Shown here one piece after another: positions 2,557-34,105 of a DNA stretch of 64,000 bases (position 1 is the first letter of the stretch; each line of letters begins with the position of its first letter). The position numbers and the translations under genes are program-made. Location: the sequence record NC_061449.1; one strand, 5' to 3'. The notes beneath the pieces were generated by a model, which searched no databases, was not told the DNA's origin, and was given only the letters and a program-made list of their open reading frames with translations.

Positions 2557-5371
2557 AAAAGGCCCAGCATTCACGATACGTCCGAAACGAATAGCTGCAT
2601 TCGATGCGCTGCTTGGTGACGACGTTAAGGCGGATGCCGCATCCGATATGGATTTCTTATCGGAGAATAGTTCGAGTGGGATTAACTTTCTCGAAAAGGG
2701 CGAGGTTAACATTGTTGACCTCGTTGAAGGTGCTTTAGAACAACGCACACTTGTGCCGCGTGATTTGAAGTTTGATGACAGTTCGATGCCCCGCGCCAAG
2801 AACTTCCTTGAGTGGTGTACTAGTCCAGACTTCTTAAAAGCCGACCCGTATCTCGAACAGGCCATGATTGGTCTGCGCTTGTTTGGTGAGATCTGCGTTA
2901 AGTGCTCACCGAACTTGCAATGGATGTACACTGAAAACCATGAGCCACAAGAAACGACAGCCGCGATAGAGACACACTTACACCTACTGCATAACGGTGT
3001 GTGCCCTCATTGCGGCGCTCGTCGTTCTGAGATGATTCGCAGAAAAGAGATGAACTTCTACAACGAGCTGGCTGTGAACGCCGGACAGCGTTGTGTGATT
3101 GCTTCAACTCCTGTGTTGACCTCTCGTGGTATCATGCCTATCGGACACATGATGATTGGTCATGACAGTCCTGGATTCCATAAGCCGCAGCGTAACTTCA
3201 ATGCGCACAACGGCCGTGAGATCAAGAACGTCAGCCAAGTCTACGTGTCAGATGAAGCACCAACCAAAGTCGTCACGCTCGCTAATGGCATGTGGATTGA
3301 AGCAACTCATGAGCACCCTGTGCGCACTGAGCAAGGCTTTAAGAAAGTGTCTAAGCTGCGTGGCGGTGAGCGTATCGAAATCAAACTCGGTACGAACTCG
3401 TGGGGCAAGATACAGCGTCCAGTCTCTATCTATGATGCTGGTCTATCTACGCGAGAAGAAGCGCTGCGTTATATTGCTGAACGTAGTGTGCCTCTTGGCG
3501 AAAAGATGCAGTACGTTACCGAAGACCCAGACGCACTTCAAATGGTGTGGTCGATTCTAATCAACGCTGGCCACATGCCGCAGATCGTTCACGGTACGCG
3601 CATGTGGAGCTTGGTGTATGACTTGACTGAACAACCCGAGTGCCGTTCTGTTCACGTCGAGGTAATCTCCGTTGATGATGGTACGCCGCAGGTCACGTAT
3701 GACTTGCAGATGGAAGGACTGCCGCAGTTCGTTGCGTCCGGCCTTGTGCATCACAACAGCGGGAAGTCGGTTGTAGTAGCGATGATCTCGACCTATCTGA
3801 CGCACAGACTGCTTATGTCGCAGTCGCCTACCGGCATCTTGGGCATCGACAGCACAACCGTATTGCACGGTACGTTCGTTGCCCTGACACAGAAGCAAGC
3901 GTCTGATACACTCTGGACTCCGTACTTCAACTACATCATGGGTAGTCCGTGGTTCCAAGCATATCATGATCTGATTCGCAAACACGAACGCCGTTACGGC
4001 ATCGAGGTGATGAAGATTCGTGATACGTTCGTTCTGTACGGACACAGGAACTTCGTTATCTACCCTGCCGGGCCTGATGGTCGTATTCTTCGTGGTCGAA
4101 CCCGTGTACTTGCGGTAATCGACGAAGTGGCGTATTTCGATAACGACGCCCAATCCAAGAAGATCAAAGTCAGTGCTGGTGCTGTGTACGGTGCACTTGA
4201 CCGTTCACTTGCAACTGTTCGTTCTGCCGAGATGCGGCAAGTCGAATCTGGTTATGATGAAGCATTCACGGGATATTTCTGTAACATCAGTAGTCCAGTT
4301 CACGCCCGTGATAAGATTAACGAATTGCTTCGTATGTCAGTAGGCTCTGAGAAGCTGCTGGGTATTCATGCTCCTACATGGAAGATGAACCCGACAATGC
4401 CTCGCACCTCTGAGTTCTTAGTCGAAGCGTTTCGTCGTGACCCGGTAGGTGCAGCCCGAGATTACGGAGCAGAAGCACCGTTGTCAGCTAACCCATTCAT
4501 CACGCAGCCTACGTTTATCTCAGATGCTATACGTGAGAAAGGTCGTTCGATGTGTACTTATACCCACCACATCATTCGACACAAAGACGGTGAACGCCAG
4601 CGCTATGGTAGTCTCGTCAAAGCGGCAACGACAACCAAAGCGTCGATACTTGCAATTGACGCAGGCTTCTCGAACAACAGCTTCGCACTCGTTACAGGCT
4701 CACGCGATGAAGCCGGTATTATCAGTGTCGATTGTCTGGTAGAGATCGTACCGAAGCCTGGCATCCCTCTGAACTACACCCTCATATTTGACGAGCTATT
4801 GATTCCGCTATGTCGTGCGCGTAACGTCCGCGTAATGCTTGCTGACCAGTGGCAGTCACTCAAGTTGTTGCAGGATGCAAAACTGAAAGTGGATTCCATT
4901 GAGGAGTCCGACCAGTACAGCTTGAAGTATCAGGATATGTGGACTGTTAAGACGATGTTCGAATCGCAGCCTAGTCGTATCAGTCTGCCTCGAATGACTC
5001 ACGCGAAAACTATCGCTGACACGTTGAAATACGACGGCGATGAATACCCTCAGTGCTTCGAGAACAAACCAACAGAGCACTTGATCATGCAGTTGCAGAC
5101 TGTGCAAGATACAGGCCGCAGCGTAATCAAGAACACAGGGGCAACCGATGACTTGTGGCGAGCAATGGCACTCATGGTCTACGGATTTGAGTGTGGTGAG
5201 TACGACGAGTATCTGACGAAAGCGCCAGAAGTCTCAGTCAACCGTGACCCGAATCGCTTGGGTCGCGTAGCGCATAGACTCAACTCAGGCTCTGCTGGTA
5301 GTTCACGACAGGCGCTCACTGGTGGTCGAGTTCTTGGTTCTGCTCGCACTCGAATGATTGGCCGTAAATAA
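2543..5371 (+). CDS. terL: terminase large subunit, intein-containing
   Basis: After removing the intein, Walker A reads NAGQR-SGKS; Walker B VIDEVAYF; nuclease motif LAIDAGFSNNSF; C-terminal DDLWRA; CxxC pairs in the N-terminal part. Confidence 0.85.
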   Translation: MAKPKKGPAFTIRPKRIAAFDALLGDDVKADAASDMDFLSENSSSGINFLEKGEVNIVDLVEGALEQRTLVPRDLKFDDSSMPRAKNFLEWCTSPDFLKADPYLEQAMIGLRLFGEICVKCSPNLQWMYTENHEPQETTAAIETHLHLLHNGVCPHCGARRSEMIRRKEMNFYNELAVNAGQRCVIASTPVLTSRGIMPIGHMMIGHDSPGFHKPQRNFNAHNGREIKNVSQVYVSDEAPTKVVTLANGMWIEATHEHPVRTEQGFKKVSKLRGGERIEIKLGTNSWGKIQRPVSIYDAGLSTREEALRYIAERSVPLGEKMQYVTEDPDALQMVWSILINAGHMPQIVHGTRMWSLVYDLTEQPECRSVHVEVISVDDGTPQVTYDLQMEGLPQFVASGLVHHNSGKSVVVAMISTYLTHRLLMSQSPTGILGIDSTTVLHGTFVALTQKQASDTLWTPYFNYIMGSPWFQAYHDLIRKHERRYGIEVMKIRDTFVLYGHRNFVIYPAGPDGRILRGRTRVLAVIDEVAYFDNDAQSKKIKVSAGAVYGALDRSLATVRSAEMRQVESGYDEAFTGYFCNISSPVHARDKINELLRMSVGSEKLLGIHAPTWKMNPTMPRTSEFLVEAFRRDPVGAARDYGAEAPLSANPFITQPTFISDAIREKGRSMCTYTHHIIRHKDGERQRYGSLVKAATTTKASILAIDAGFSNNSFALVTGSRDEAGIISVDCLVEIVPKPGIPLNYTLIFDELLIPLCRARNVRVMLADQWQSLKLLQDAKLKVDSIEESDQYSLKYQDMWTVKTMFESQPSRISLPRMTHAKTIADTLKYDGDEYPQCFENKPTEHLIMQLQTVQDTGRSVIKNTGATDDLWRAMALMVYGFECGEYDEYLTKAPEVSVNRDPNRLGRVAHRLNSGSAGSSRQALTGGRVLGSARTRMIGRK
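3092..3757 (+). mobile_element. intein (222 aa, mini or degenerate endonuclease) in the terminase Walker A motif
   Basis: Starts CVIASTPVLT (block A), block B ATHEHPV, ends GLVHHN followed by Ser +1. Confidence 0.9.
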
Positions 5372-5414
5372 AAAGCTAATTTAGACGAGACAAGTTATTA
5401 CGAGGAATAAGATC

Positions 5415-5630
5415 ATGAGTAAGCACTACAACCCGTTGCTGAACAACAACTCTGTAAAGTCAGAGTCAAGCGCTACACAGGTGGACAGTACGAGTGCCGC
5501 GTTCGTAGTTGAAAGCGCTAACGTCTGTCCTAAGTGCAGTTCTTCTACAGTGCCGACACAATTGCTCTCAGGTGAGGGTGTTATGTTTTGCACTAGCTGC
5601 CGCGTGAGTCTCGCAATCCCTTTGAAGTGA
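5415..5630 (+). CDS. small zinc-ribbon protein
   Basis: CPKC…CTSC pairs, GAGG RBS. Confidence 0.65.
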   Translation: MSKHYNPLLNNNSVKSESSATQVDSTSAAFVVESANVCPKCSSSTVPTQLLSGEGVMFCTSCRVSLAIPLK

Positions 5631-5637
5631 GGTAAAG

Positions 5638-7572
5638 ATGGGTATTCAGGTTGGTCGTCGTCAACTGGGCGGCGCACCCCAAGAGCCTGCGAAGAAGAAA
5701 CAAAGTTCTCTCGGAGCAGCCTCTTTACCACGCGAGATAGGCAAAGCAATCCGCAGTGAGAGTTCGCGTCGTCACACAGACTTCGTATCTCAATCTGCGG
5801 GTGGCGCAGGAATGGCTGCCGGTAATATGCAAATTGGTACCGTGCCTCTTGATATCGACTTAGAGCCGATGATGGAAGGTATGGACTATGATGCTGACGA
5901 CCGACAGCTATTCAACGTCTACCGCGATATGTATCACTTCGACCCAATCTGCGGTTCATACGTAGACTTGTTCTCAACGCTGCCATTCTCCGATGTGAGT
6001 TTCAGTGGCGCGAAGGACAGTGTGCTTGAGCCGTATTACGAAGTGAACGAACGTCTGTCACTGACCACCAGTATGCCGAACATCACGACTGATATTCAGG
6101 TTACTGGCGCGTTCGTTGGCAGTATGATCTACAACAAAGACCGTAAGAAGTTCATTGACCTGATGACGCACCGTTACGACAACATCGACGTAACGCCACT
6201 GCCGTTTATCAGTCAGGACCCAATGTTTGAGCTGCGCATCCCTCAGTATGTGAAGTCTGCTTTCGCTAAAGAAGGTAAACGTATTGACGCGCTGAAAAAA
6301 GAGCTGGGCAGTGGGTTCGTTGATAAGTTGATGAACGACACGACGATGGAACTCGATCCCATCGGCACAATCTACATTCCACGTAAGACGTTCAGCTTCG
6401 GCGAGGGTATCTCGGTGTTACGCCGTGTGCTGCCGATCTGGCTGATCGAAAAGAACCTGTATCGTGGTACGCTGATTGAGTCTGGTCGTCGTCAACGCGG
6501 TATCTTACATGCCCAGCTGGGTGATGGTGATCAGTGGGAACCGTCGCAAGAAGAAATGGACTTTATGACCGACCTTCTTCTGTCTGCGGATAGTGACCCG
6601 ATTGGATCTATCATCACAACGCGTCTGGGTGTGAACATCAGTGAGTTCCGTCAAGGCGGTGACTTCTGGAAGATTACGGACATCTGGGACCAGACTGCTC
6701 AATTCAAAATGCGAGCTATGGGTATCAGTGAGGCCTTCCTTAGCGGTGAAGCGAACTATGACTCGGGTGCTGCTGGCCTGACGATTTTCGTTGAAGCGAT
6801 GCGAGCGTTCCGTGATCATCTGACGCGTAAAGTCTACTACGAGAAAGTCTTCCCTCTTATCAGTATGATGAACGGCCTTGCTGTTCAACGTAACGGTAAG
6901 ATCATCAAGAAGAACAATCTCATGGAAGGCGGCCTGACCGAAGTAATGTACAAACTGAATGACGGTAGCAAACTGTTTATTCCGAACGTGCATTGGTCTA
7001 AGCAACTGCGTCCTGATGTTGACCAAGCGATGATGGAAAACTTACGTGCGATGACTGAACTGGGTGTTCCGGTTCCATTACGTGCAATCGCTGCGGCTGG
7101 CGGGTACAACTTCGACCAGATTCTTATGGATCAGGATGAAGACCTCGCAATGCGTCGCAAGCTGATGGCGTATCGCAAACGTCAGTCTGAAATCGACGCC
7201 GAGTTCGCTCCGCCTGAACCTGGTGCTGGTGGTGAGGGTGATAGCTTTAGCTCGACCAGTAGCCTGTCTGCTGATCTGAAGCGTCGCCGTCGTCACGTAG
7301 CGGGCATTGGTCTATCGTCTGCCGTTCTCGGTGGTGAGCCGCGTAAGCTGCTTAATCGAGACTGGGGTGAGCGTTCTGAAATCTTCGAACTGTCCAAGAC
7401 AGGCAAGAAGAAGCACGTCTTCCGTCAGTCTGTCGCTAACTCAAAAGCTAACGACCAGATCTGGAAAGCGGCGAAGAACTACGAAGCCAACAAAACGATG
7501 CCTCTTGACAACGGCAAGGTGTCATTCCAGCCGACTGCTCATGAGCTTCGTGCAATGTCGAGAATCCGTTAA
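5638..7572 (+). CDS. probable portal protein
   Basis: 644 aa, just downstream of terminase; RRQRGILHAQLG resembles the T4 gp20-type clip region; helical character. Confidence 0.6.
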   Translation: MGIQVGRRQLGGAPQEPAKKKQSSLGAASLPREIGKAIRSESSRRHTDFVSQSAGGAGMAAGNMQIGTVPLDIDLEPMMEGMDYDADDRQLFNVYRDMYHFDPICGSYVDLFSTLPFSDVSFSGAKDSVLEPYYEVNERLSLTTSMPNITTDIQVTGAFVGSMIYNKDRKKFIDLMTHRYDNIDVTPLPFISQDPMFELRIPQYVKSAFAKEGKRIDALKKELGSGFVDKLMNDTTMELDPIGTIYIPRKTFSFGEGISVLRRVLPIWLIEKNLYRGTLIESGRRQRGILHAQLGDGDQWEPSQEEMDFMTDLLLSADSDPIGSIITTRLGVNISEFRQGGDFWKITDIWDQTAQFKMRAMGISEAFLSGEANYDSGAAGLTIFVEAMRAFRDHLTRKVYYEKVFPLISMMNGLAVQRNGKIIKKNNLMEGGLTEVMYKLNDGSKLFIPNVHWSKQLRPDVDQAMMENLRAMTELGVPVPLRAIAAAGGYNFDQILMDQDEDLAMRRKLMAYRKRQSEIDAEFAPPEPGAGGEGDSFSSTSSLSADLKRRRRHVAGIGLSSAVLGGEPRKLLNRDWGERSEIFELSKTGKKKHVFRQSVANSKANDQIWKAAKNYEANKTMPLDNGKVSFQPTAHELRAMSRIR

Positions 7573-12685: not shown

Positions 12686-13456
12686 ATGAGCAACGTTGAT
12701 AAAACAATGCCAGAAGGTCGCTGGGAGTTCAATGAGCCAGTTGCTGCTGTGTTCGATAACATGCTGCAAAACTCAATTCCTTCCTATGATCGTATGCGCG
12801 ATCTGACCTATCGTCTCGGTCGCCAGTTCGTAACTCCTGGTTCAGCTATCGTTGACCTGGGCGCTTCACTCGGCCGTGCTATCGAACCGTTCTGTGCTGA
12901 GTTCGGCGAGTACATGTATCTTCACGCTGCTGATCGTCCTGAGCCTGATCGTGAAGTTGGCAACATGTATTGCTGCTACGAGGTCGCGCCAGCAATGCTG
13001 GAGCGTCTGCGTGAAAACCCTGTGCTGAAAACGGCTAAAGCGAAAATCAGTAGCGAGTCGCTGGTGGAAGTAGACACGTTCCGCTTCGGCGAGCAGGTAG
13101 AGTGTTCGCTCATTCTGTCTGTGCTTACTCTCCAGTTCACGCCGATTGAGCACCGTCAGCACATTTTGGAGAAAGTGTACGACTCGTTGCAGAAAGGCGG
13201 TGCGTTCATTCTCGTTGAGAAAGTGTTGGGTGACGACAACTTCCTCGACCGTCTGCTTGTTGATACTTACTACGGCATGAAGGGCGACAACGGTTATTCG
13301 CAAGAGAGCATTGCGACGAAACGCAAAGCGCTTGAAGGTGTACTCGTACCTGTCAAGGCCGCGTGGAACGAAGAACTGCTGCGCAAAGCAGGCTTCGACC
13401 GCGTTGAATGTTTCTACCGCGATCTTAACTTCGCCGGATGGATCGCAATTAAGTAA
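12686..13456 (+). CDS. cmoA: carboxy-S-adenosyl-L-methionine synthase (CmoA family)
   Basis: WEFNEPVAAVFDNMLQNSIPSY, DLGASLG, TLQF, LVEK, NGYSQESIATKRKALEGV parallel E. coli CmoA ([51 protein letters not shown]), including the Arg199 equivalent. Confidence 0.9.
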   Translation: MSNVDKTMPEGRWEFNEPVAAVFDNMLQNSIPSYDRMRDLTYRLGRQFVTPGSAIVDLGASLGRAIEPFCAEFGEYMYLHAADRPEPDREVGNMYCCYEVAPAMLERLRENPVLKTAKAKISSESLVEVDTFRFGEQVECSLILSVLTLQFTPIEHRQHILEKVYDSLQKGGAFILVEKVLGDDNFLDRLLVDTYYGMKGDNGYSQESIATKRKALEGVLVPVKAAWNEELLRKAGFDRVECFYRDLNFAGWIAIK

Positions 13457-13463
13457 GGGAAGT

Positions 13464-14729
13464 ATGATGAAAGTAAACGGGCGTATCTTAGCAATCGTGC
13501 CACACAAGACCCTCCAGGACAGGACTAAGTCTGGTGTTGGTGCGTACATTGATGGACTTGAAGCGTACGGCTTCTGCGACTTCATCACTGACGGTGAAAA
13601 CAGCTCTGTCACCAAGAGCCTGTGGTTTAACTACGGTGATACCACTCTAAGCGACGGTTACAAAGTTGGTCACATCCAGAGTGCTCTGCTTGAAGCGCTC
13701 GACCGCATTCCGTATCGTGCAATTATTTGTAGCACCTACGAAGCTGTCGAAGCTGCTGTCGGTCTTGGTCTGCCTAAGATTATGCCCGTTTACTATCGTT
13801 CACACAACAGCTTCCTGTTAACGCAGGACCTGAATGGGCTTGGTGCTGAGAAGATGCACCGTGCGTTGCTGCAAGCGCCTGTGACTGGTCTGCGCATCTT
13901 AGCGAACTGTGATTCAACTGCGCGTGTGCTGTCTGAGATTTATAAAACTGAGGCTGCTGTCGCGTATAACGCATTCAGTGTATCTGACTACAATCCACCT
14001 GCGAAACGTAAACCTTCGCTGTTGATTATCTGTCGCTACGAAAAGGTTAAGCGTCCTGCGTTTGCTGCGCGTATCGCTGCTGCGTCTGGCTTACCTGTTC
14101 GTGTTATGACCGGCTCTGATCGTCAGGTCAAAAGCTGGGAGAAAGAGCTTGCTGATGCAGGCGTAAAAGATTACCAAGTCGTCAGTGGTTTGTCTGGTGA
14201 CGAGAAGATGGCGTTCATCGGACAATGTACCGTAGCGCTGTCATGTGCCGAAGTAGAGTCATTCGCTAACGGTGTGCGTGAGACTATCCCGTACTGCCCG
14301 ACGTTCGTTGTGCAAACTTCTAAGTACGATTGGGCGCGAGACTATACGCGCTTCTGCTCTGAGAACAAGCACATCCACATTCGCACTGTTGATCGTGTGA
14401 CTGCGAAAGAGGTGGAAGAACTGGGCAATGAGATTGCTTACTGGGCCCGCACCAAGTATCTGACTAAAGCTGAACGCGTTACGCTGCTGACCGAATGGTG
14501 CAAGCGCGTGGACAAAGGCTGGGCCGACTTCATGAAGAATGCAGTCGTGCCTGATGACGGCAAGCCGATGAAGACCGACCTGTCGAAAGAACTCGAAGAA
14601 AAAGGCGTAGTAGATTGGTCGAAGACGCAGACGTTAATGCGTACTGTAAAAGCTATACACAAGTGTCATGCTCGTATGGGCTTGACGTTCGATGGCACCA
14701 AAATCAAAACGAAAGGGAGGAAGAAATGA
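13464..14729 (+). CDS. GT-B fold glycosyltransferase (GT4-like)
   Basis: N-terminal SGVGAY, LLIICRYEKVKRP (R…K donor-binding pattern), ESFANGVRE (E-x7-E motif). Confidence 0.75.
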   Translation: MMKVNGRILAIVPHKTLQDRTKSGVGAYIDGLEAYGFCDFITDGENSSVTKSLWFNYGDTTLSDGYKVGHIQSALLEALDRIPYRAIICSTYEAVEAAVGLGLPKIMPVYYRSHNSFLLTQDLNGLGAEKMHRALLQAPVTGLRILANCDSTARVLSEIYKTEAAVAYNAFSVSDYNPPAKRKPSLLIICRYEKVKRPAFAARIAAASGLPVRVMTGSDRQVKSWEKELADAGVKDYQVVSGLSGDEKMAFIGQCTVALSCAEVESFANGVRETIPYCPTFVVQTSKYDWARDYTRFCSENKHIHIRTVDRVTAKEVEELGNEIAYWARTKYLTKAERVTLLTEWCKRVDKGWADFMKNAVVPDDGKPMKTDLSKELEEKGVVDWSKTQTLMRTVKAIHKCHARMGLTFDGTKIKTKGRKK

Positions 14730-15757
14730 GCGTGATTGGTGATATCTATAATATTCCGCAACCGTACGCGATGTTCTGTGGTAACGCCACGACGAAAGCA
14801 ATGGCGAAGATCACTGCCGGTATGGTTGAGTGGGCGTCAGAGAAAGTCTGCTGTGTAGTTGACGATGCTAATAACCTGTTCCCTGAAATGCCTCACGTTG
14901 AAATTCGTGACCTCAATAAGACCGATGCAGAAACTCTGGTCATCGGGTTTGCGCCTTTTGGCGGTCAGATTAACGAAGACATTGATCGCGCTATCTGCGA
15001 AGCATTGAAGCGTGGCCTGAACGTTGCTGCTGCTCTGCACGTCAAGCTGTCTGACAATCCTAAATACTTCGCTCTAGCTCGTGAGCATGGGGTATCGCTG
15101 TATGACTTCCGCCACCACCCTGAGCAATATCCTCTGGGCACTGGTCTTCCTCGTGCCGGTGTTCGTGTTCTTACTGTTGGTACTGACTGTTCGTGCGGTA
15201 AGAAATTTACTGCACTCGCACTGACTAAGAAGCTGACCGAGCTGAAACAGAAAGCTGTGTTCTGTGCTACCGGTCAAACTGGTTTTCTGATTAGCGGTCG
15301 CGGCATCAACAACGACACTGTGGTCGCTGACTTCCTTGCTGGTGCTGCTGAGTGGCTGTCACCTGCTGACGAAGAAGCTATCTATCTGATTGAAGGTCAA
15401 GGTGCGTTACGCCATCCGGCGTACACTGGTGGCAGCATGAGTCTGATTGCTGGCTCCCAGCCCGACGCTATCGTTGTCTGCCACACTGTTGGCCGTAACT
15501 TCATGATGAACACCGAGCGCGAGATCAACATCGTTGACGAGATCTCTGCTAATCTCGCTGCTGCCGCAATGCACGACTGGTACCCGAAAGTCGTCGGTAT
15601 CAGTATCAACTTCTGCGAAGTGAAGATGACGAAGAAAGAGCGCGAAGTATATTTGCGTAATCTTTCTAAAAGCAGTGGTTACGTGGCGTTTGACCCACAA
15701 GCTGGCGGTGAAGAGTTTGACCGTGTTGCGCACTACATCACGACGCTCAAACGCTGA
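14726..15757 (+). CDS. DUF1611 family protein (DgcN-like, P-loop)
   Basis: VLTVGTDCSCGKKFTALAL, ATGQTGFLI, DFLAGAAEWL, IEGQGALRHPAY, GSQPDAIVVCH; ATGA overlap with the GT gene. Confidence 0.85.
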   Translation: MSVIGDIYNIPQPYAMFCGNATTKAMAKITAGMVEWASEKVCCVVDDANNLFPEMPHVEIRDLNKTDAETLVIGFAPFGGQINEDIDRAICEALKRGLNVAAALHVKLSDNPKYFALAREHGVSLYDFRHHPEQYPLGTGLPRAGVRVLTVGTDCSCGKKFTALALTKKLTELKQKAVFCATGQTGFLISGRGINNDTVVADFLAGAAEWLSPADEEAIYLIEGQGALRHPAYTGGSMSLIAGSQPDAIVVCHTVGRNFMMNTEREINIVDEISANLAAAAMHDWYPKVVGISINFCEVKMTKKEREVYLRNLSKSSGYVAFDPQAGGEEFDRVAHYITTLKR

Positions 15758-16701
15758 TGAAAGTCTTAATCGACAATGCCGCGTTAGCGAGTAATGCGGC
15801 CTATTTAAAATCACTCGCTCCGTCCATGATTCCGGTTGTGAAAGGTAATTTCTACGGTCATGGTTTAGATTGTGTGAGAGCATTCTCCTTAGGGTTTGAG
15901 GTGCTCGCTGTCCATAGCGACCGCGAAGCACTTGCGCTGCGTGAACTCGAACTCGACCACACGCTGTTAATTCTCGGCGGTGTATACGGTCGCATGTGGA
16001 ATACAGTGCCTGTTCTGAACGCAAAGCAAGTCGGCAAGTATGAAGGACGATACGCTGTGTTTGCTGATTGGGGCTGTCGTCGCATCAACGTCAAGCCCGA
16101 AGATCTCACGCACCCACCCGCGTTGATTCTTGTTCACTCGGATGACTATCGTGTGCCTGTGTCTGAGTACGACGCTAATGAGATCGCACAACGCTACAAC
16201 GTGCCACTGTCTATGCTGTCTGTAGGCTCAAGCATGAACGTGCTCGATCAATATTCACCGAAGTTGAAACCTCGTGTCGGTATGGCAATTACCGGATATA
16301 GTAGCGATGAAACTGTGAACGGTAATTTGTGTGTAGCGAAGACAGTGCTTGCTCGTACCTGCGATAAGCTGGATGCGGGTCGAGTATTCGGTTACGGTGC
16401 GTTGGTGCCTAACAGCGCAGACAAGTTCCTGTACTCGATTGATGTTGGTTATTACGATAACCTGTATCAGTCCAACAAGAACACACCTGTGTATTGTCCT
16501 GATGCACCACATGCACAGGTCACGCTTCTCACAGGCGTTGCCAACGCAATCAGCATGAACCATGCCTTCGTATTGTCAGATATCGAGCTACCGTTTGACT
16601 CTGAGATTGAAATACTCGGACCTAACGTTCGCGCAGACTATCTGGCTAAACTCCACGGAACAACAACTGCGAATATTTTAAGGCTGGGTAATCATGGCTA
16701 A
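15757..16701 (+). CDS. alr: PLP-dependent amino-acid racemase (alanine racemase family)
   Basis: PVVKGNFYGHG (PLP Lys), EALALR, FGYGA (catalytic Tyr), GYYDN, ISMNH. Confidence 0.85.
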   Translation: MKVLIDNAALASNAAYLKSLAPSMIPVVKGNFYGHGLDCVRAFSLGFEVLAVHSDREALALRELELDHTLLILGGVYGRMWNTVPVLNAKQVGKYEGRYAVFADWGCRRINVKPEDLTHPPALILVHSDDYRVPVSEYDANEIAQRYNVPLSMLSVGSSMNVLDQYSPKLKPRVGMAITGYSSDETVNGNLCVAKTVLARTCDKLDAGRVFGYGALVPNSADKFLYSIDVGYYDNLYQSNKNTPVYCPDAPHAQVTLLTGVANAISMNHAFVLSDIELPFDSEIEILGPNVRADYLAKLHGTTTANILRLGNHG

Positions 16702-17563
16702 ACACGTTTTGCGCAAGCTGTTTGAACAGCACGTTAAAGCAGAGGTCAAAGATGACAAGGTGGCAGTGCTGCTGTCCAGTGGTCTTGACGGACTTGTTAG
16801 CGGGCTTGCTGCCCATGACTTAGGAAAGAAGGTACACGCCTTTACTTTCCAAATGGGCGACAACGAAAGTTTCGACAGCAAACACGCACGTAAAGTCGCA
16901 GAGAAGATGGGATGGGAGTTCACGCTTGTGAAAGTCCCTACGTCTGACAGCGCTATCGTACAGGGTTGGAAAGCGCTTCACGCGAAGTACCGTTGCGTTA
17001 AGAAGCGCGACTATGAGTGCGCATATCCTATGGTGTATTGCTACAAGGCAATCAAGGATGCAGGTTACAAGTATGTACTGAGCGGCCTTGTCGCTGATGC
17101 CTACTTCTGTTTTGCGCGTAACACTCACATCGCTAAAATCAGCGGACCGCACAGCGTACTCGAAAAGTTCGACGAGTACCGCAAAGCATATTGGGCACCG
17201 TGGTTCAAGAGCGGTAAGAAGTCTCTCGGCGTTGATGGATATAACCCTAGCGGTATGCTGCAACACGAAATGCTGTGCGACTCTTTCGGTCTGACGCACG
17301 TTAACCCGTGGCTGATAAAGAAAGTCCATGACTACTTCATTGGTCGTTCATGGCAAGAACTAAATCAACCCAAGCAGAAAATGCCAATAACAGAAGCATG
17401 GGCTGATCACATCGCGGTTGTAGGCCATCGCCCGCATCGCGGTTATCAAACAGAAGCTGGAGTACCTGCGTACTTCGAACGCTTACTGGATAATCCTGAG
17501 ATCAACTTCAACGGTCGCAAGCGTGTTATGGACCTTGCCCGTGATTGGTCAACGAGGACTTAA
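16694..17563 (+). CDS. asparagine-synthetase-like ATP-dependent amide ligase (synthetase domain only)
   Basis: VAVLLSSGLDG PP-loop, HAFTF…DSKHARKVAEKMG, YVLSGLVADAYF (cf. VLSGEGADELF); no N-terminal glutaminase domain. Confidence 0.8.
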   Translation: MAKHVLRKLFEQHVKAEVKDDKVAVLLSSGLDGLVSGLAAHDLGKKVHAFTFQMGDNESFDSKHARKVAEKMGWEFTLVKVPTSDSAIVQGWKALHAKYRCVKKRDYECAYPMVYCYKAIKDAGYKYVLSGLVADAYFCFARNTHIAKISGPHSVLEKFDEYRKAYWAPWFKSGKKSLGVDGYNPSGMLQHEMLCDSFGLTHVNPWLIKKVHDYFIGRSWQELNQPKQKMPITEAWADHIAVVGHRPHRGYQTEAGVPAYFERLLDNPEINFNGRKRVMDLARDWSTRT

Positions 17564-20984: not shown

Positions 20985-21827
20985 ATGACCGTAATCAGTC
21001 CAATCCGTTATCAGGGCAATAAGCGAAGCCTTATCCCTCTTATTCTTGAGCACACACCAAGCGTACAAGACTGTCCGCGTATGGTCGATGTGTTTGGTGG
21101 TAGTGCCACTGTGTGCGCTAACATGCCTCAGAAGTTTCGTGTGTACAACGAGCTTAGTCCTCAGGTGTTTGAGATCGTTAAGATGCTGGTTGAGCAAGAC
21201 CCGAAGAAAACTCTCGGTCAAGTCAAGCGTCTGGTAAAACACTGGTGCCTGACAAACAGCAACGAAGCGAACTATGATGCGTTTCGAACTGTCGTCCAGA
21301 AGAAGCGTACACCGATATTGCATTACGTTGCACACAGACATGCGCACTCGAATATGCTGCGCTTCAACCAGCAGGGTGTGTACAACGTAGGCTTTGGTGA
21401 TCGTGGTCTGATTGGAAAGTTCGACGAGCTGGAGCACGAACTCACTACTTTCCACAGTCACATGCAGGGTGTCCACCTGACGAACATGAAGTACGGTAAG
21501 TTACTGAGTCGCTTAGGCCACCAACTGAACTACAACACGTTCTGTTACTTCGACCCGCCGTATCTGGCGAGCGGTGCAATGCAGTACGGCAAGTGGACTG
21601 AAACGAATGAGCGTAACCTGCTTGCTACTCTGGAGCAACTCAATCGCTTAGGCGTACCGTGGATGTTGAGCAACGTAACCGAACACCGACACTTCTCAAA
21701 CGATTTGTTGAAGCGCTGGTTAAAGAAACACGCAACGACCGTGTTGTACCCGAACAAAAGCTATGCGATGAACAATGGCCAGAGTGGCTCGCATGGTACT
21801 GTTGAAATTCTGGCAATGAACTACTGA
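20985..21827 (+). CDS. dam: DNA adenine methyltransferase (Dam / D12 class)
   Basis: SPIRYQGNKRSL, DVFGGSATV, YFDPPY; GATC specificity not established. Confidence 0.88.
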   Translation: MTVISPIRYQGNKRSLIPLILEHTPSVQDCPRMVDVFGGSATVCANMPQKFRVYNELSPQVFEIVKMLVEQDPKKTLGQVKRLVKHWCLTNSNEANYDAFRTVVQKKRTPILHYVAHRHAHSNMLRFNQQGVYNVGFGDRGLIGKFDELEHELTTFHSHMQGVHLTNMKYGKLLSRLGHQLNYNTFCYFDPPYLASGAMQYGKWTETNERNLLATLEQLNRLGVPWMLSNVTEHRHFSNDLLKRWLKKHATTVLYPNKSYAMNNGQSGSHGTVEILAMNY

Positions 21828-31263: not shown

Positions 31264-31974
31264 ATGGCAAAAACTGCTATCAAAGCAAAGGAAGGGAAAA
31301 AGAAAAAGAACGACGGACTAAAGTTTGAGTTGAAGAAACTCAACTCCGTCGCCCAGTTGAAAGGTGCAGCGTACAACCCACGCTTCATTACAGACAGTCG
31401 CCTGAAAGCGCTCGAAGGTTCTTTGGGTAGTTTCGGTGACCTGTCTGGTATCGTGTTCAACAACAACGTCAAATCGGGCGTGTTGATCTCTGGCCACCAG
31501 CGCCTGAAATCAATCGAGGGCTGGAAGACTCGCATCGAGGTCCAGAAGTCTGTTGATAAGCACGGTACAATCGGTCTGGGCTACATTCACGCAACGCATC
31601 CAAAGAAAGCTGATAAGGTGATCAGCATTCCTCTGCGTATCGTGAACTGGACCGATAAGAAAGCTGAGTATGCTGCAAACATCGCGGCGAACGCTCACGG
31701 CGGTGAGTTCGATAACAAGAAACTCGCCAAGCTGGTTGAACAGCTCGACCTCAACACAATCAAGCCTCAGTTACTTGGTCTTGACCCGTTAGAGATTCGC
31801 GGCCTGCAACAAAAGCTGAAAGTACAGGCTGTTGTGCAGGACGAAAAACGCGCTGGCAAGACTACCGGCCAGATGAACGGTAGTACCGGTAAGTTCAATG
31901 AGTACAACGCCGATGATGTTGGCGATACTCTGAACTGCACCTGCCCGCGCTGTGGATTTAAGTTCGAGGGATAA
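31264..31974 (+). CDS. ParB/sulfiredoxin-like N-terminal domain protein with C-terminal CPxCG zinc knuckle
   Basis: LKGAAYNPRFI…SLGSFG…LISGHQRLKSI; ends CTCPRCGFKFEG; directly upstream of the C5-MTase. Confidence 0.8.
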   Translation: MAKTAIKAKEGKKKKNDGLKFELKKLNSVAQLKGAAYNPRFITDSRLKALEGSLGSFGDLSGIVFNNNVKSGVLISGHQRLKSIEGWKTRIEVQKSVDKHGTIGLGYIHATHPKKADKVISIPLRIVNWTDKKAEYAANIAANAHGGEFDNKKLAKLVEQLDLNTIKPQLLGLDPLEIRGLQQKLKVQAVVQDEKRAGKTTGQMNGSTGKFNEYNADDVGDTLNCTCPRCGFKFEG

Positions 31975-31975
31975 T

Positions 31976-34105
31976 ATGATCATCAAGCCGCCTACGATGA
32001 AGGAAATCAACAAGCTGGATAAACCCTGGCGTGGTATGAGTTTCTTCGCAGGTTGCGGTGGTTCTTCTACCGGCCACAAGATGGCCGGTATCAACATCTT
32101 GCTGAGTAACGAGTTTGTTGACCCAGCAAGAGAGTCATATGAAGCGAACCACCCGACAACTAAAGTGCTGCCTCATGACATTCGCCGCCTCGATCCCGGT
32201 AAGCTGTTACGTTACTGCGGTCTCGATAAAGGCGAACTTGATTTACTTGACGGTAGTCCTCCATGCTTCACCGAAGACACTATCATTCATACAGCAGACG
32301 GCATGAAGTTCATCTCGGACATGAACGTCGGCGACAGAGCGATGACCAGTGTCGGGCAGTATTACCCCGTATACGACACAATGGTCAGACCGTATGTCGG
32401 TACGATGCACAAAGTTGAAACGCTGATCAGCAGTAACAAGGCGACGCCAGAGCATCCGTTCTTCGTTAGACGTGCTCTGGCCGAAGGTGGTTACTCTGAC
32501 CCGTTCTGGTGTGATGCGAAAGACGTGCAGGAAGGCGACTTGCTTGGCACTCCTCGAGTTACTCCAGACCAACAGCCGGGTGTGTATTACGATCAGATTG
32601 CGCAACTGCCTAAGACGATTCAGCAGTGGGTGAGCATTCCTGAGTTCTGGTGGATGGTGGGGCACTGGTGCGATCGGGGTTCAATCGAAACCGTTAGCGG
32701 CATTGAAGTCGTTAGCTTCGAATCGCATACCAGTCTTGAGAACGCGATGATTGAGCAGGCGTTTGACGCGCTCAAACTCAGTAGCCTGAATCGTATCGAC
32801 ACGATGACTGCGCAACGTAAAACGTTCCGTACTGTTATCGATGCAGAGCTGGTACAGTTCTTGCGTCGTTTCGTAAGTCAGGGCAACAACACGTTCTCCC
32901 GTCGTCTTCCTGCAATGATGTTCCACATGAGCGCCGAGCTGAAACAACAATTCATTCTCGGTTGTGCTGGGCATGACTATGTGACTGCTATGGGCACGGG
33001 TCTAGCGATCACATCAAGCAGCAAACGCTTCCTGCTTGAGCTTAACTACCTGTGCTGTTCTGCTTTCAATCGCCCTCTGTTTAACGGTATGATTTGGGGT
33101 GATGTTTACTTCGGTAGCACCATGACACCCCGCGAGCGTAACAGTTCGCGTGAGCATATAGGCTACCTGTTCCTGCAGGACGAGCACAACTTCTTCCACG
33201 AGTTCAGTGATAGCGATTCGCATCTCTGGACCGAAGTGATTGAGAACCTTGCGTATCAAGCAACGTGCGACGTGTACAATTTCTCTGTTGAAACAGACGA
33301 AACGTATGTGGCTAACGGTGTTGTAGTCCACAACTGCAAAGGCTTCTCGACTGCTGGTGTAAAAGAAGAAGGCTGGGGCAAAGAGGTTAAGTACAGCGAC
33401 AATAAATATCAGCAGGTGGATGACCTGTTCGATCAGTATTGTCGTATGCTGCAAGGCATGATGCCTAAGGTGTTCACGGCAGAAAACGTTAGTGGTCTTG
33501 TGAAGGGGATCTCGAAAGGGTATTTCCTTGAGATCATGAAGACGTTCGACAAGCTCGGTTATTATGTACGAGCGCCAATGCTGAATGCCTGTTGGCTAGG
33601 TGTACCTCAGTCGCGTGAGCGTATCATCTTCATGGGTGTGCGTAAAGACATAGCCCATGCGCTTGGCTATAAGTCGGCTCGCGAGGCTGTGCCTGATGTT
33701 ATCCCGTGCGATACGCAAGCCTTCCTGGGTGATGCGTTGCCTCACATCTTACGATACAAGACGACGCAGAAAGACCTGATCAAGTATCTGCCTGCAATTA
33801 ACGGACCGATGCCTACGATTACAGCGTCTGATGCAATCGCGTATGAAACCGCGCGTTTCTCGTCTGCTGGGTTTATCGAAGATAACAAAGGCCATCGCCG
33901 TAAACTGACCATCGACGAACTGCTGGTAGTATCTGGAATGCCGTCTGACTATAAGCTGGTTGGCAAATTCGAAGAACAGTGGGAACGTCTTGGTCGTGTC
34001 TGTGTGCCAGCAATGACACACGCAGCATCGAAGGCTTTCATCGAACATATTCTTTTGCCTTACGCGAAGAAGAAAAAGAAAAAGCCCGGCGATATATTTA
34101 AATAA
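31976..34105 (+). CDS. C5-cytosine DNA methyltransferase family, intein-split; candidate carboxymethyltransferase
   Basis: Motif I FFAGCGG, IV GSPP-C (split by intein), VI AENV, VIII QSRERI, IX RKLTIDEL, motif X ERLGRVCVP (Arg where GN[AS]V has Asn); ATG at 31976 after GAGGG. Confidence 0.9.
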   Translation: MIIKPPTMKEINKLDKPWRGMSFFAGCGGSSTGHKMAGINILLSNEFVDPARESYEANHPTTKVLPHDIRRLDPGKLLRYCGLDKGELDLLDGSPPCFTEDTIIHTADGMKFISDMNVGDRAMTSVGQYYPVYDTMVRPYVGTMHKVETLISSNKATPEHPFFVRRALAEGGYSDPFWCDAKDVQEGDLLGTPRVTPDQQPGVYYDQIAQLPKTIQQWVSIPEFWWMVGHWCDRGSIETVSGIEVVSFESHTSLENAMIEQAFDALKLSSLNRIDTMTAQRKTFRTVIDAELVQFLRRFVSQGNNTFSRRLPAMMFHMSAELKQQFILGCAGHDYVTAMGTGLAITSSSKRFLLELNYLCCSAFNRPLFNGMIWGDVYFGSTMTPRERNSSREHIGYLFLQDEHNFFHEFSDSDSHLWTEVIENLAYQATCDVYNFSVETDETYVANGVVVHNCKGFSTAGVKEEGWGKEVKYSDNKYQQVDDLFDQYCRMLQGMMPKVFTAENVSGLVKGISKGYFLEIMKTFDKLGYYVRAPMLNACWLGVPQSRERIIFMGVRKDIAHALGYKSAREAVPDVIPCDTQAFLGDALPHILRYKTTQKDLIKYLPAINGPMPTITASDAIAYETARFSSAGFIEDNKGHRRKLTIDELLVVSGMPSDYKLVGKFEEQWERLGRVCVPAMTHAASKAFIEHILLPYAKKKKKKPGDIFK
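32264..33334 (+). mobile_element. intein (357 aa) with degenerate LAGLIDADG-like region, inserted at the catalytic Cys
   Basis: Starts CFTEDT, block B ATPEHPFFV, block F/G VYNFSVETDETYVANGVVVHN, +1 residue Cys (the catalytic PC Cys). Confidence 0.92.

Follow-up and report, generated by a model that had tools for sequence, protein, structure and literature searches.

An AsnS-type ligase in Erwinia phage pEa_SNUABM_17

The window analysed here is a stretch of 64,000 nucleotides from the sequence record NC_061449.1, the 263,916-bp genome of Erwinia phage pEa_SNUABM_17, an Alexandravirus jumbo phage whose host is Erwinia amylovora. The gene in question is an open reading frame at 16694-17563 on the plus strand, which begins with ATG, encodes 289 amino acids and is annotated as hypothetical protein MPK72_gp021. 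It follows genes for a homologue of the carboxy-S-adenosylmethionine (carboxy-SAM) synthase CmoA, a glycosyltransferase (GT)-like protein, a DUF1611/DgcN-like protein and an alanine racemase-family enzyme (Alr). The overlaps between GT and DUF1611, DUF1611 and Alr, and Alr and the gene under study are 4, 1 and 8 nt, respectively, so that these four genes are translationally coupled. The features of the locus are listed in Table 1. As the best overall explanation, held with somewhat better than even confidence, we propose that the 289-residue protein is a CmoY-type ATP-dependent amide ligase acting on the phage's own DNA.

Table 1. Predicted genes and sequence features of the pEa_SNUABM_17 cassette and its partners, in window coordinates
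Feature	Position	Strand	Basis or remark
CmoA homologue (carboxy-SAM synthase)	12686..13456	+	First gene of the operon; NCBIfam CmoA 2e-42; 30% identity to SpCmoA
GT-B/GT4-like glycosyltransferase-like protein, 420 aa	13467..14729	+	Accessory; missing from 8 of 24 isolates
DUF1611/DgcN-like protein, 343 aa	14726..15757	+	Constant partner of this CmoY sub-clade
Alanine racemase-family pyridoxal phosphate (PLP) enzyme (Alr-type), 314 aa	15757..16701	+	Accessory; in 8 of 24 isolates
Predicted CmoY-type ATP-dependent amide ligase, AsnS-family PP-loop synthetase domain only, 289 aa	16694..17563	+	Pfam, AlphaFold2 (AF2) fold, SpCmoY homology
PP-loop SSGLDG, residues 28-33	16775..16792	+	Aligns with AsnB SGGLDS 234-239; S28, G30 and D32 invariant
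Loop CVKKRDYEC, residues 101-109	16994..17020	+	Aligns with AsnB 318-326 active-site loop
LSGLVAD, residues 129-135	17078..17098	+	Aligns with AsnB LSGEGSD 345-351; Asp135 (AsnB Asp351) invariant
Variable segment, residues 136-170	17099..17203	+	Follows racemase presence
Second variable patch, residues 206-218	17309..17347	+	Pooled with 136-170 in the mosaic test
Conserved protein, 206 aa	17565..18185	+	Starts 1 nt past the CmoY stop; belongs to the backbone and recurs in genera whose ligases are of other types
ParB-like protein	31264..31974	+	Upstream of CmoX; homologues near CmoX on contigs L009 (adjacent) and L016 (~1.7 kb upstream)
CmoX candidate, C5-methyltransferase homologue, 717 aa	31952..34105	+	SPPC motif; Arg in ERLGRV aligns with SpCmoX R350
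Intein, ~357 aa, at the catalytic Cys of the CmoX SPPC motif	32264..33334	+	Hint/intein signatures; first residue Cys, ends His-Asn, next residue Cys

Among the Pfam families, the ligase matched Asn_synthase (PF00733; E-value 8e-15, 55.8 bits against a cut-off of 21), with the match confined to profile positions 1-133 of 354, and more weakly the QueC and NAD-synthase families of PP-loop proteins. A PDB search with the sequence alone gave a marginal hit to asparagine synthetase (ASNS; E-value 0.24), whereas profile and fold searches gave clear ones. An AF2 model built from 20 homologues (predicted local distance difference test score, pLDDT, 93.9; predicted template modelling score, pTM, 0.91) was most similar to the synthetase domain of human ASNS (8SUE; Z 22.1, root-mean-square deviation 3.0 A, 259 residues, chain residues 228-524), followed by beta-lactam synthetase (beta-LS, 1MBZ; Z 21.6), carbapenam synthetase (1Q19; Z 21.2), E. 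coli AsnB (1CT9; Z 19.7) and TsnB9 (Z 17.1). The aligned lengths of 253-261 residues with ASNS, beta-LS, CarA and AsnB amount to an end-to-end match, and PP-loop enzymes outside the AsnS family (LarE, ArgG, NadE, GuaA, ArtA) scored at Z 12.4 or below.

Residue 3 of the ligase aligns with residue 208 of AsnB, so that its N-terminus coincides with the start of the AsnB synthetase domain and the protein therefore lacks the N-terminal Ntn (N-terminal nucleophile) glutaminase domain. A six-frame search of the whole phage genome for GATase_7 gave no match, whereas all 14 control genomes matched, and the same kind of search found a single Asn_synthase homologue in the genome. The protein is thus a stand-alone AsnS-type ligase whose amine must come from outside, which confirms the observation of an earlier sequence-only reading, namely a PP-loop synthetase domain without glutaminase. 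The four segments singled out in that reading, SSGLDG, LSGLVAD, KYRCVKKR (residues 98-105) and KSGKKS (residues 172-177), were all located where it had placed them.

A profile alignment with AsnB places LLSSGLDG opposite the PP-loop at residues 232-239, and S130-G131-L132-V133-A134-D135 opposite S346-G347-E348-G349-S350-D351. Both Mg-binding aspartates are invariant among the aligned homologues. The same acyl-adenylate and amine-attack chemistry would be expected from the shared fold and the aligned PP-loop and SGxxxD motifs, but several residues differ: AsnB Glu348 is replaced by Leu132, and Thr322, Thr323 and Arg325 by Arg105, Asp106 and Glu108, while some 30 additional residues lie between the Mg-binding Asp and a PFLD-like motif. 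In E. coli AsnB, Glu348, Thr322 and Arg325 are catalytic residues for the formation of beta-aspartyl-AMP. Within the same fold family, the beta-lactam and carbapenam synthetases no longer make asparagine and use the adenylate for another acceptor. In these enzymes a vestigial N-terminal domain persists, and the reaction is the intramolecular cyclisation of a small molecule, whereas the phage protein has no N-terminal domain and its gene stands in a DNA-modification context.

Relationship to SpCmoY and the carboxymethylation genes

The nearest characterised relative of the ligase is SpCmoY from Synechococcus phage S-B43 (UniProt A0A514ABJ0), with 34% identity in a pairwise alignment (E-value 2e-53, residues 14-287 against 10-263). 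In a translated search of 50,697 phage genomes, the best match outside the Alexandravirus group was an S-B43 gene annotated as 'putative asparagine synthase', together with its counterparts in two near-identical Synechococcus phages. This S-B43 gene (147774-148589) is SpCmoY, its coordinates being in agreement with the source data of the original paper (PMC12783734).

The CmoA/CmoX/CmoY pathway has been in the literature since December 2025 (Yang et al., Nat Commun 2025, PMC12783734). Phage CmoA produces carboxy-SAM, and CmoX, a homologue of C5-methyltransferases marked by Arg350 and an SPPC motif, places a carboxymethyl group on cytosine in DNA. SpCmoY, described as an AsnS-type ATP-binding domain without the glutamine-hydrolysing domain (Supplementary Table 1 of that paper), ligates glycine to the resulting 5-carboxymethylcytosine (5cxmC) in an ATP-dependent manner; the reaction was demonstrated in E. 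coli as well as in vitro, where genomic DNA and a 110-bp duplex served as substrates. It is the one characterised ligase of the pathway, and the authors left other amines open (PMC12783734).

In addition to the CmoA homologue, the window encodes a CmoX candidate, located ~14 kb from the ligase gene. Its N-terminal part is 56% identical to SpCmoX as far as DGSPPC, where an intein intervenes, and the match resumes at CKGFS; provided that the intein splices, the candidate would carry both sequence features published for CmoX. Homologues without the intein were found on metagenome contigs L009 (394 aa) and L016 (346 aa). On four independent contigs (L009, L011, L016 and L017), CmoX belongs to the same gene block as DUF1611, Alr, CmoY and CmoA.

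To the observed fold, motifs, lack of a glutaminase domain, homology and co-occurrence with CmoA and CmoX, the proposed mechanism adds a series of inferred steps. CmoA would form carboxy-SAM from SAM and prephenate, and CmoX, after intein splicing, would transfer the carboxymethyl group to C5 of cytosine in DNA, giving 5cxmC. The ligase would then bind ATP at its PP-loop and adenylate the 5cxmC carboxylate with release of pyrophosphate, and an external amine would attack the acyl-adenylate, yielding an amide and AMP. The GT4-like protein may afterwards add a sugar. We consider it very probable that the ligase works on 5cxmC DNA with an external amine. The sequence-only reading had named carboxymethylated DNA among the possible acceptors, a prediction strongly supported by the homology to SpCmoY and by the presence of CmoA and CmoX in the window, though no longer new since the publication of the pathway.

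A CmoY sub-family with a DUF1611 partner

The phage genome search returned 34 records with the ligase at 81-100% identity, which represent 24 distinct Erwinia/Dickeya jumbo phages. An additional search of IMG/VR found 433 relatives; gene neighbourhoods were taken from the best 80, of which 72 are SpCmoY-like (34-41% identity). A DUF1611 gene adjoins the ligase gene in all 34 phage records and in 11 of 11 metagenome contig types, that is, in every context with a visible upstream gene, whereas none of the 72 SpCmoY-like loci has a DUF1611, Alr or GT gene nearby; CmoA is present in 42 and CmoX in 46 of these loci. Judged by its sequence and gene context, the group is a distinct sub-family of CmoY, since the DUF1611 partner that defines it always stands alongside it and is found at none of the SpCmoY-like loci.

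Both clades are stand-alone, glutaminase-free AsnS PP-loop domains encoded together with CmoA and with an SPPC-bearing CmoX in which the arginine is also present. Their common invariants include the PP-loop positions, C101, K103, K104, E108 and C109 (unchanged in 21 of 21 aligned homologues, SpCmoY included), G131, A134 and D135, a PKQK motif, H248, and R275 and R277. The sub-family is recognised by the PP-loop variant SSGLDG, as opposed to SGG[VM]DS, by a 13-residue insertion at 168-183, by the conserved block HRPHRGYQTEA and by some 15 positions at which it differs consistently from the SpCmoY clade. It is further set apart by its genomic arrangement, with DUF1611 always present, GT4-like and racemase genes added in some members, and, in the window phage, an intein-split CmoX some 14 kb away.

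The proposal that the basic segments of the ligase bind nucleic acid is a weak one. A role in binding phosphate, of ATP or of the DNA backbone, may reasonably be assigned to K103 and K104 within KYRCVKKR, because neither varies in either clade and both belong to the loop aligned with the AsnB active-site loop. The KSGKKS segment, on the other hand, falls inside the sub-clade-specific insertion and varies among homologues (KSGLDG, REGASG, ELGKDS and others). SpCmoY acts on DNA though it is acidic (pI 5.8), and the overall charge of the ligase (pI 9.3) is therefore no evidence for this role.

The constant partner is related to DgcN. The DUF1611 protein was recognised by Pfam (E-values 6e-49 and 2e-18), by the NCBIfam DgcN model (NF041892; E-value 1e-88, with a score of 297 bits that falls below the equivalog cut-off of 480) and by comparison with PDB 7XRJ (E-value 5e-58). 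In the Alr-like protein, the PLP lysine is retained within VVKGNFYGHG and the second catalytic tyrosine within FGYGA. The combination of a DUF1611/DgcN relative with an enzyme that inverts amino acid chirality recalls the DgcN-DgcA pathway of D-glutamate. Bacterial DgcA, however, is a racemase of another kind that acts on an N-acetylated amino acid, whereas the phage enzyme is of the PLP-dependent Alr type for free amino acids and is encoded inside a DNA hypermodification operon. For the GT4-like protein, the assignment is based on homologues with weak Glycos_transf_1 and Glyco_transf_4 matches and on its Atlas neighbours, all of which are GT4.

Among the 24 isolates, three forms of the cassette occur in eight phages each. 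The form CmoA-DUF1611-CmoY is found in AD1, Alexandra, 2910A and SNUABM_33, 22, 18, 16 and 28; the GT gene is added in SNUABM_25, 13, 34, 45, 46, 14, 7 and 21, and both GT and Alr in SNUABM_17, 1, 23, 31, 40, 32, 3 and 20. The metagenome contigs, whose ligase homologues are 55-81% identical, carry the same module, often joined to CmoX. The gene orders are ParB-like, CmoX, CmoA, GT, DUF1611, Alr, CmoY on L009; CmoX, GT, DUF1611, Alr, CmoY, CmoA on L011; CmoX, DUF1611, Alr, CmoY, CmoA on L016 and L017; and CmoA, GT, DUF1611, Alr, CmoY on L014. Shorter blocks comprise DUF1611, Alr, CmoY (L013, L018), DUF1611, CmoY (L015, L104) and GT, DUF1611, CmoY (L007, L105).

In sister genera, the same position after CmoA is occupied by a different AsnS-like ligase (~24% identity) without DUF1611. 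This ligase stands alone in Rivsvirus and is followed by a gene annotated as 'oxygenase' in Sasquatchvirus Y3; the corresponding loci are L022 (Erwinia phage Y3) 4025-6616 and L021 (pEa_SNUABM_5) 4051-5744. As differing ligases occupy one position after CmoA, the locus behaves as an exchangeable hypermodification cassette.

The words 'DUF1611' and 'racemase' have zero occurrences in the text of PMC12783734, where the GT4-like, DUF1611 and Alr genes go unmentioned. The enzyme class and the pathway were already known; absent from that paper and from the other papers found are the sub-family coupled to DUF1611, the racemase and GT that its cassettes may include, the mosaic segment described below and the series of cassettes within one genus.

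The racemase, the variable segment and the source of the amine

Comparison of the window phage with AD1, which has neither GT nor racemase, showed that the neighbouring proteins are 84-99% identical, with 97% for CmoA and 84% for CmoY, but only 58% for DUF1611. The DUF1611 gene (14726-15757, against L001:6831-7886 in AD1) is thus either the part of the cassette that changes fastest or one that has been exchanged. Within CmoY, mismatches with AD1 are concentrated in residues 136-170 and 206-218, where they reach 42% as opposed to 11% elsewhere (Fisher p 2.5e-6). The same excess was seen against the racemase-free phages SNUABM_34 (p 7.6e-6) and P0008 (p 7.9e-4). Against P0011, a fourth and more distant racemase-free lineage, it was not significant (42% versus 33%, p 0.25), and none of the racemase-bearing lineages compared showed an excess in the segment. 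Over residues 136-170 the window protein is 83-86% identical to the more distant but racemase-bearing P0005, P0006 and P0007, and only 60% identical to AD1.

Three positions separate racemase-bearing from racemase-free contexts in 14 of 14 cases: Cys or Val versus Leu at 139, Ala versus Gln at 147, and Trp versus Phe at 167. When the racemase state of six contigs was predicted from these positions before their neighbours were inspected, all six predictions were correct. A tree of the segment alone needs a single change of the racemase label, with a weak support of 65. A metagenome scan for further lineages added only two loci, each belonging to a racemase-free lineage that had been found before. 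The variable segment directly follows the Mg-binding Asp135, in the region that is ~30 residues longer than in AsnB. The AsnB region to which it would correspond in the profile alignment carries aspartate-binding residues. In our reading, the segment may be a specificity element that changes with the racemase, in keeping with the sequence-only reading, although the pattern could also have arisen from a pair of recombination events inside the ligase gene.

The sequence-only reading had suggested that the amine is an amino acid supplied by the neighbouring racemase. The retained catalytic residues, the 8-nt overlap and the complete covariation speak for it and make it suggestive, while the occurrence of ligases without a racemase and the roughly two independent events behind the covariation speak against it. 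A racemase-derived D-amino acid is proposed tentatively, at somewhat below an even chance. The covariation itself fits a non-glycine amine, possibly a D-amino acid, but leaves it unproven. More generally, the amine used by the sub-clade is probably not simply glycine but an alpha-amino acid whose identity is set jointly with the DUF1611/DgcN-like partner. This view is based on the pairing of DUF1611 with this sub-clade alone and on the insertion and fixed differences that distinguish its ligases. An amino acid joined by CmoY would give what is, in chemical terms, an N-(substituted acetyl)-amino acid, which by analogy suggests that the DUF1611 protein recognises or helps to form this bond, or else acylates a second amine on the adduct.

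Several points weigh against the favoured interpretation, in which the ligase joins such an amine to 5cxmC in the phage's own DNA. In the characterised reaction, DgcN acetylates free D-glutamate at its alpha-amine and would thereby keep this amine from being ligated, so that simple analogy does not explain the role of DUF1611. The racemase is absent from 16 of the 24 isolates that keep the ligase; the ligases of these 16 are 81-84% identical to that of the window phage. In a tree of the rest of the protein, the racemase state changes twice, leaving one or two independent comparisons, with which significance of the covariation is unattainable. Splicing of the CmoX intein is an assumption, and literature searches found no paper on the DNA chemistry of Alexandraviruses.

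Among the alternatives, the best surviving one is that glycine is ligated to 5cxmC, as by SpCmoY (giving 5gcxmC), whereas DUF1611, racemase and GT act later or elsewhere, in tailoring or in the D-amino acid or cell-wall metabolism of the host. The 34% identity to SpCmoY, the invariance of the active-site loops and of a C-terminal RKR/D motif in both clades, and the persistence of the ligase without racemase in 16 isolates are all consistent with glycine, and several clusters keep the residues that bind an alpha-amino acid carboxylate (PMC12783734). R275 and R277, unchanged in either clade, may or may not belong to the SpCmoY pocket that binds the glycine carboxylate. Against glycine stand the strict pairing of DUF1611 with this sub-clade, the sub-clade's own insertion and its fixed differences close to the catalytic SGxxAD motif, the mosaic segment that tracks the racemase, and the translational coupling of the four genes, which together render this alternative rather unlikely, if still plausible.

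A two-component ligase, in which CmoY would only adenylate 5cxmC and the DgcN-like DUF1611 protein would deliver a D-amino acid to the activated acyl group, is in our judgement quite improbable. The N-(cytosin-5-ylacetyl)-D-amino acid expected from it would be, by analogy, a substituted counterpart of the N-acetyl-D-glutamate made by DgcN. Such a division of labour would account for the constant proximity and coupling of the DUF1611 and CmoY genes and for the relationship of the partner to DgcN, for which D-type acidic amino acids are the substrates described. It would also fit the divergence of DUF1611, which exceeds that of every other protein compared between phages with and without a racemase; a protein that reads the amino acid would be expected to diverge in this way. 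However, SpCmoY completes the whole reaction without a partner (PMC12783734), the DUF1611 score lies below the DgcN equivalog cut-off, and the chemical analogy is itself inferred.

The two remaining alternatives are made unlikely by the replaced residues, by family scores far under the cut-offs and by the DNA-modification context. Ammonia-dependent amidation to 5-carbamoylmethylcytosine would match the glutaminase-free architecture, ammonia being a possible substrate for an AsnB synthetase domain on its own, and ammonia has been proposed for another, glutaminase-bearing cluster (PMC12783734). We nevertheless regard it as very improbable, given the Leu in place of AsnB Glu348, a nearest relative that uses an amino acid, and a conserved C-terminal Arg/Lys motif common to the glycine-using enzyme; it would also leave the racemase and DUF1611 without a role. 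An auxiliary metabolic gene with no connection to DNA, whose product would make free asparagine or some other small molecule of the amide or beta-lactam type, is hardly credible: the Pfam and NCBIfam family names and the structural neighbours recall it, but the AsnB equivalog models give 54.7 bits against a cut-off of 267 (TIGR01536) and 27.5 against 499 (NF006949), Glu348, Thr322 and Arg325 are replaced, and in many phages the gene lies within CmoA/CmoX blocks.

Returning to the favoured amide ligase on 5cxmC DNA, the gene neighbourhood points to what may be a more elaborate DNA decoration than in the published CmoY system. As a speculation that we consider unlikely in its full form, Alexandravirus-type phages would carry a D-amino acid linked to 5cxmC and tailored further, through acylation by the DgcN-like protein and/or glycosylation by the GT4-like one; the ligase could not do without the DgcN-like protein as its second subunit or second step, and the three cassette forms would represent a series of increasing complexity driven by host restriction. 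If true, this would be the first DNA base to contain a D-amino acid, and possibly a glyco-aminoacyl one. Should the amine be a D-amino acid or the adduct be glycosylated, known DNA-base chemistry would be widened, the widespread DUF1611/DgcN family would gain its first role in DNA modification, and new amide ligases would become available for enzymatic DNA labelling. The 24 Erwinia/Dickeya isolates are cultured, available phages and thus a concrete candidate for other CmoY amines. They also provide a natural comparison series, from ligase with DUF1611 through the addition of GT to that of GT and racemase, with a short ligase segment that seemingly switches with the racemase. These phages are under development against fire blight, so that an understanding of how their DNA escapes restriction is also of practical value.

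Additional genes were noted around the cassette. The 206-aa protein encoded immediately downstream of CmoY is conserved at 58-100% across jumbo-phage genera with different ligases, and its N-terminus HIIDGxVGG reads like a beta-alpha-beta nucleotide-binding start; it had no family match, and its AF2 model was not confident (pLDDT 41.2). A D12-class adenine methyltransferase (20985-21827) was considered as the carboxymethyl transferase and rejected, being an ordinary Dam-like protein in a genome with a proper CmoX candidate; it is 99.6% identical between pEa_SNUABM_17 and AD1 despite their differing cassettes. A homologue also lies close to the cassette on L013. On L014 (7876-8739), a gene for 3-deoxy-D-arabino-heptulosonate 7-phosphate (DAHP) synthase (PF00793) overlaps the end of the CmoY homologue; as this enzyme is the entry to the shikimate pathway and thereby to prephenate, which CmoA needs as co-substrate, the gene may serve the phage to boost its carboxy-SAM supply. 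A 302-aa GNAT acetyltransferase, possibly a tailoring enzyme, is encoded one or two genes downstream of the CmoY homologue in a racemase-free lineage (L007:9192-10100, L008:9526-10434). Finally, a gene of the Acb1 family of phosphodiesterases, which counteract the cyclic oligonucleotide-based antiphage signalling system (CBASS), was found on L016 (9556-10065), ~1.7 kb downstream of the CmoX-DUF1611-Alr-CmoY-CmoA block.

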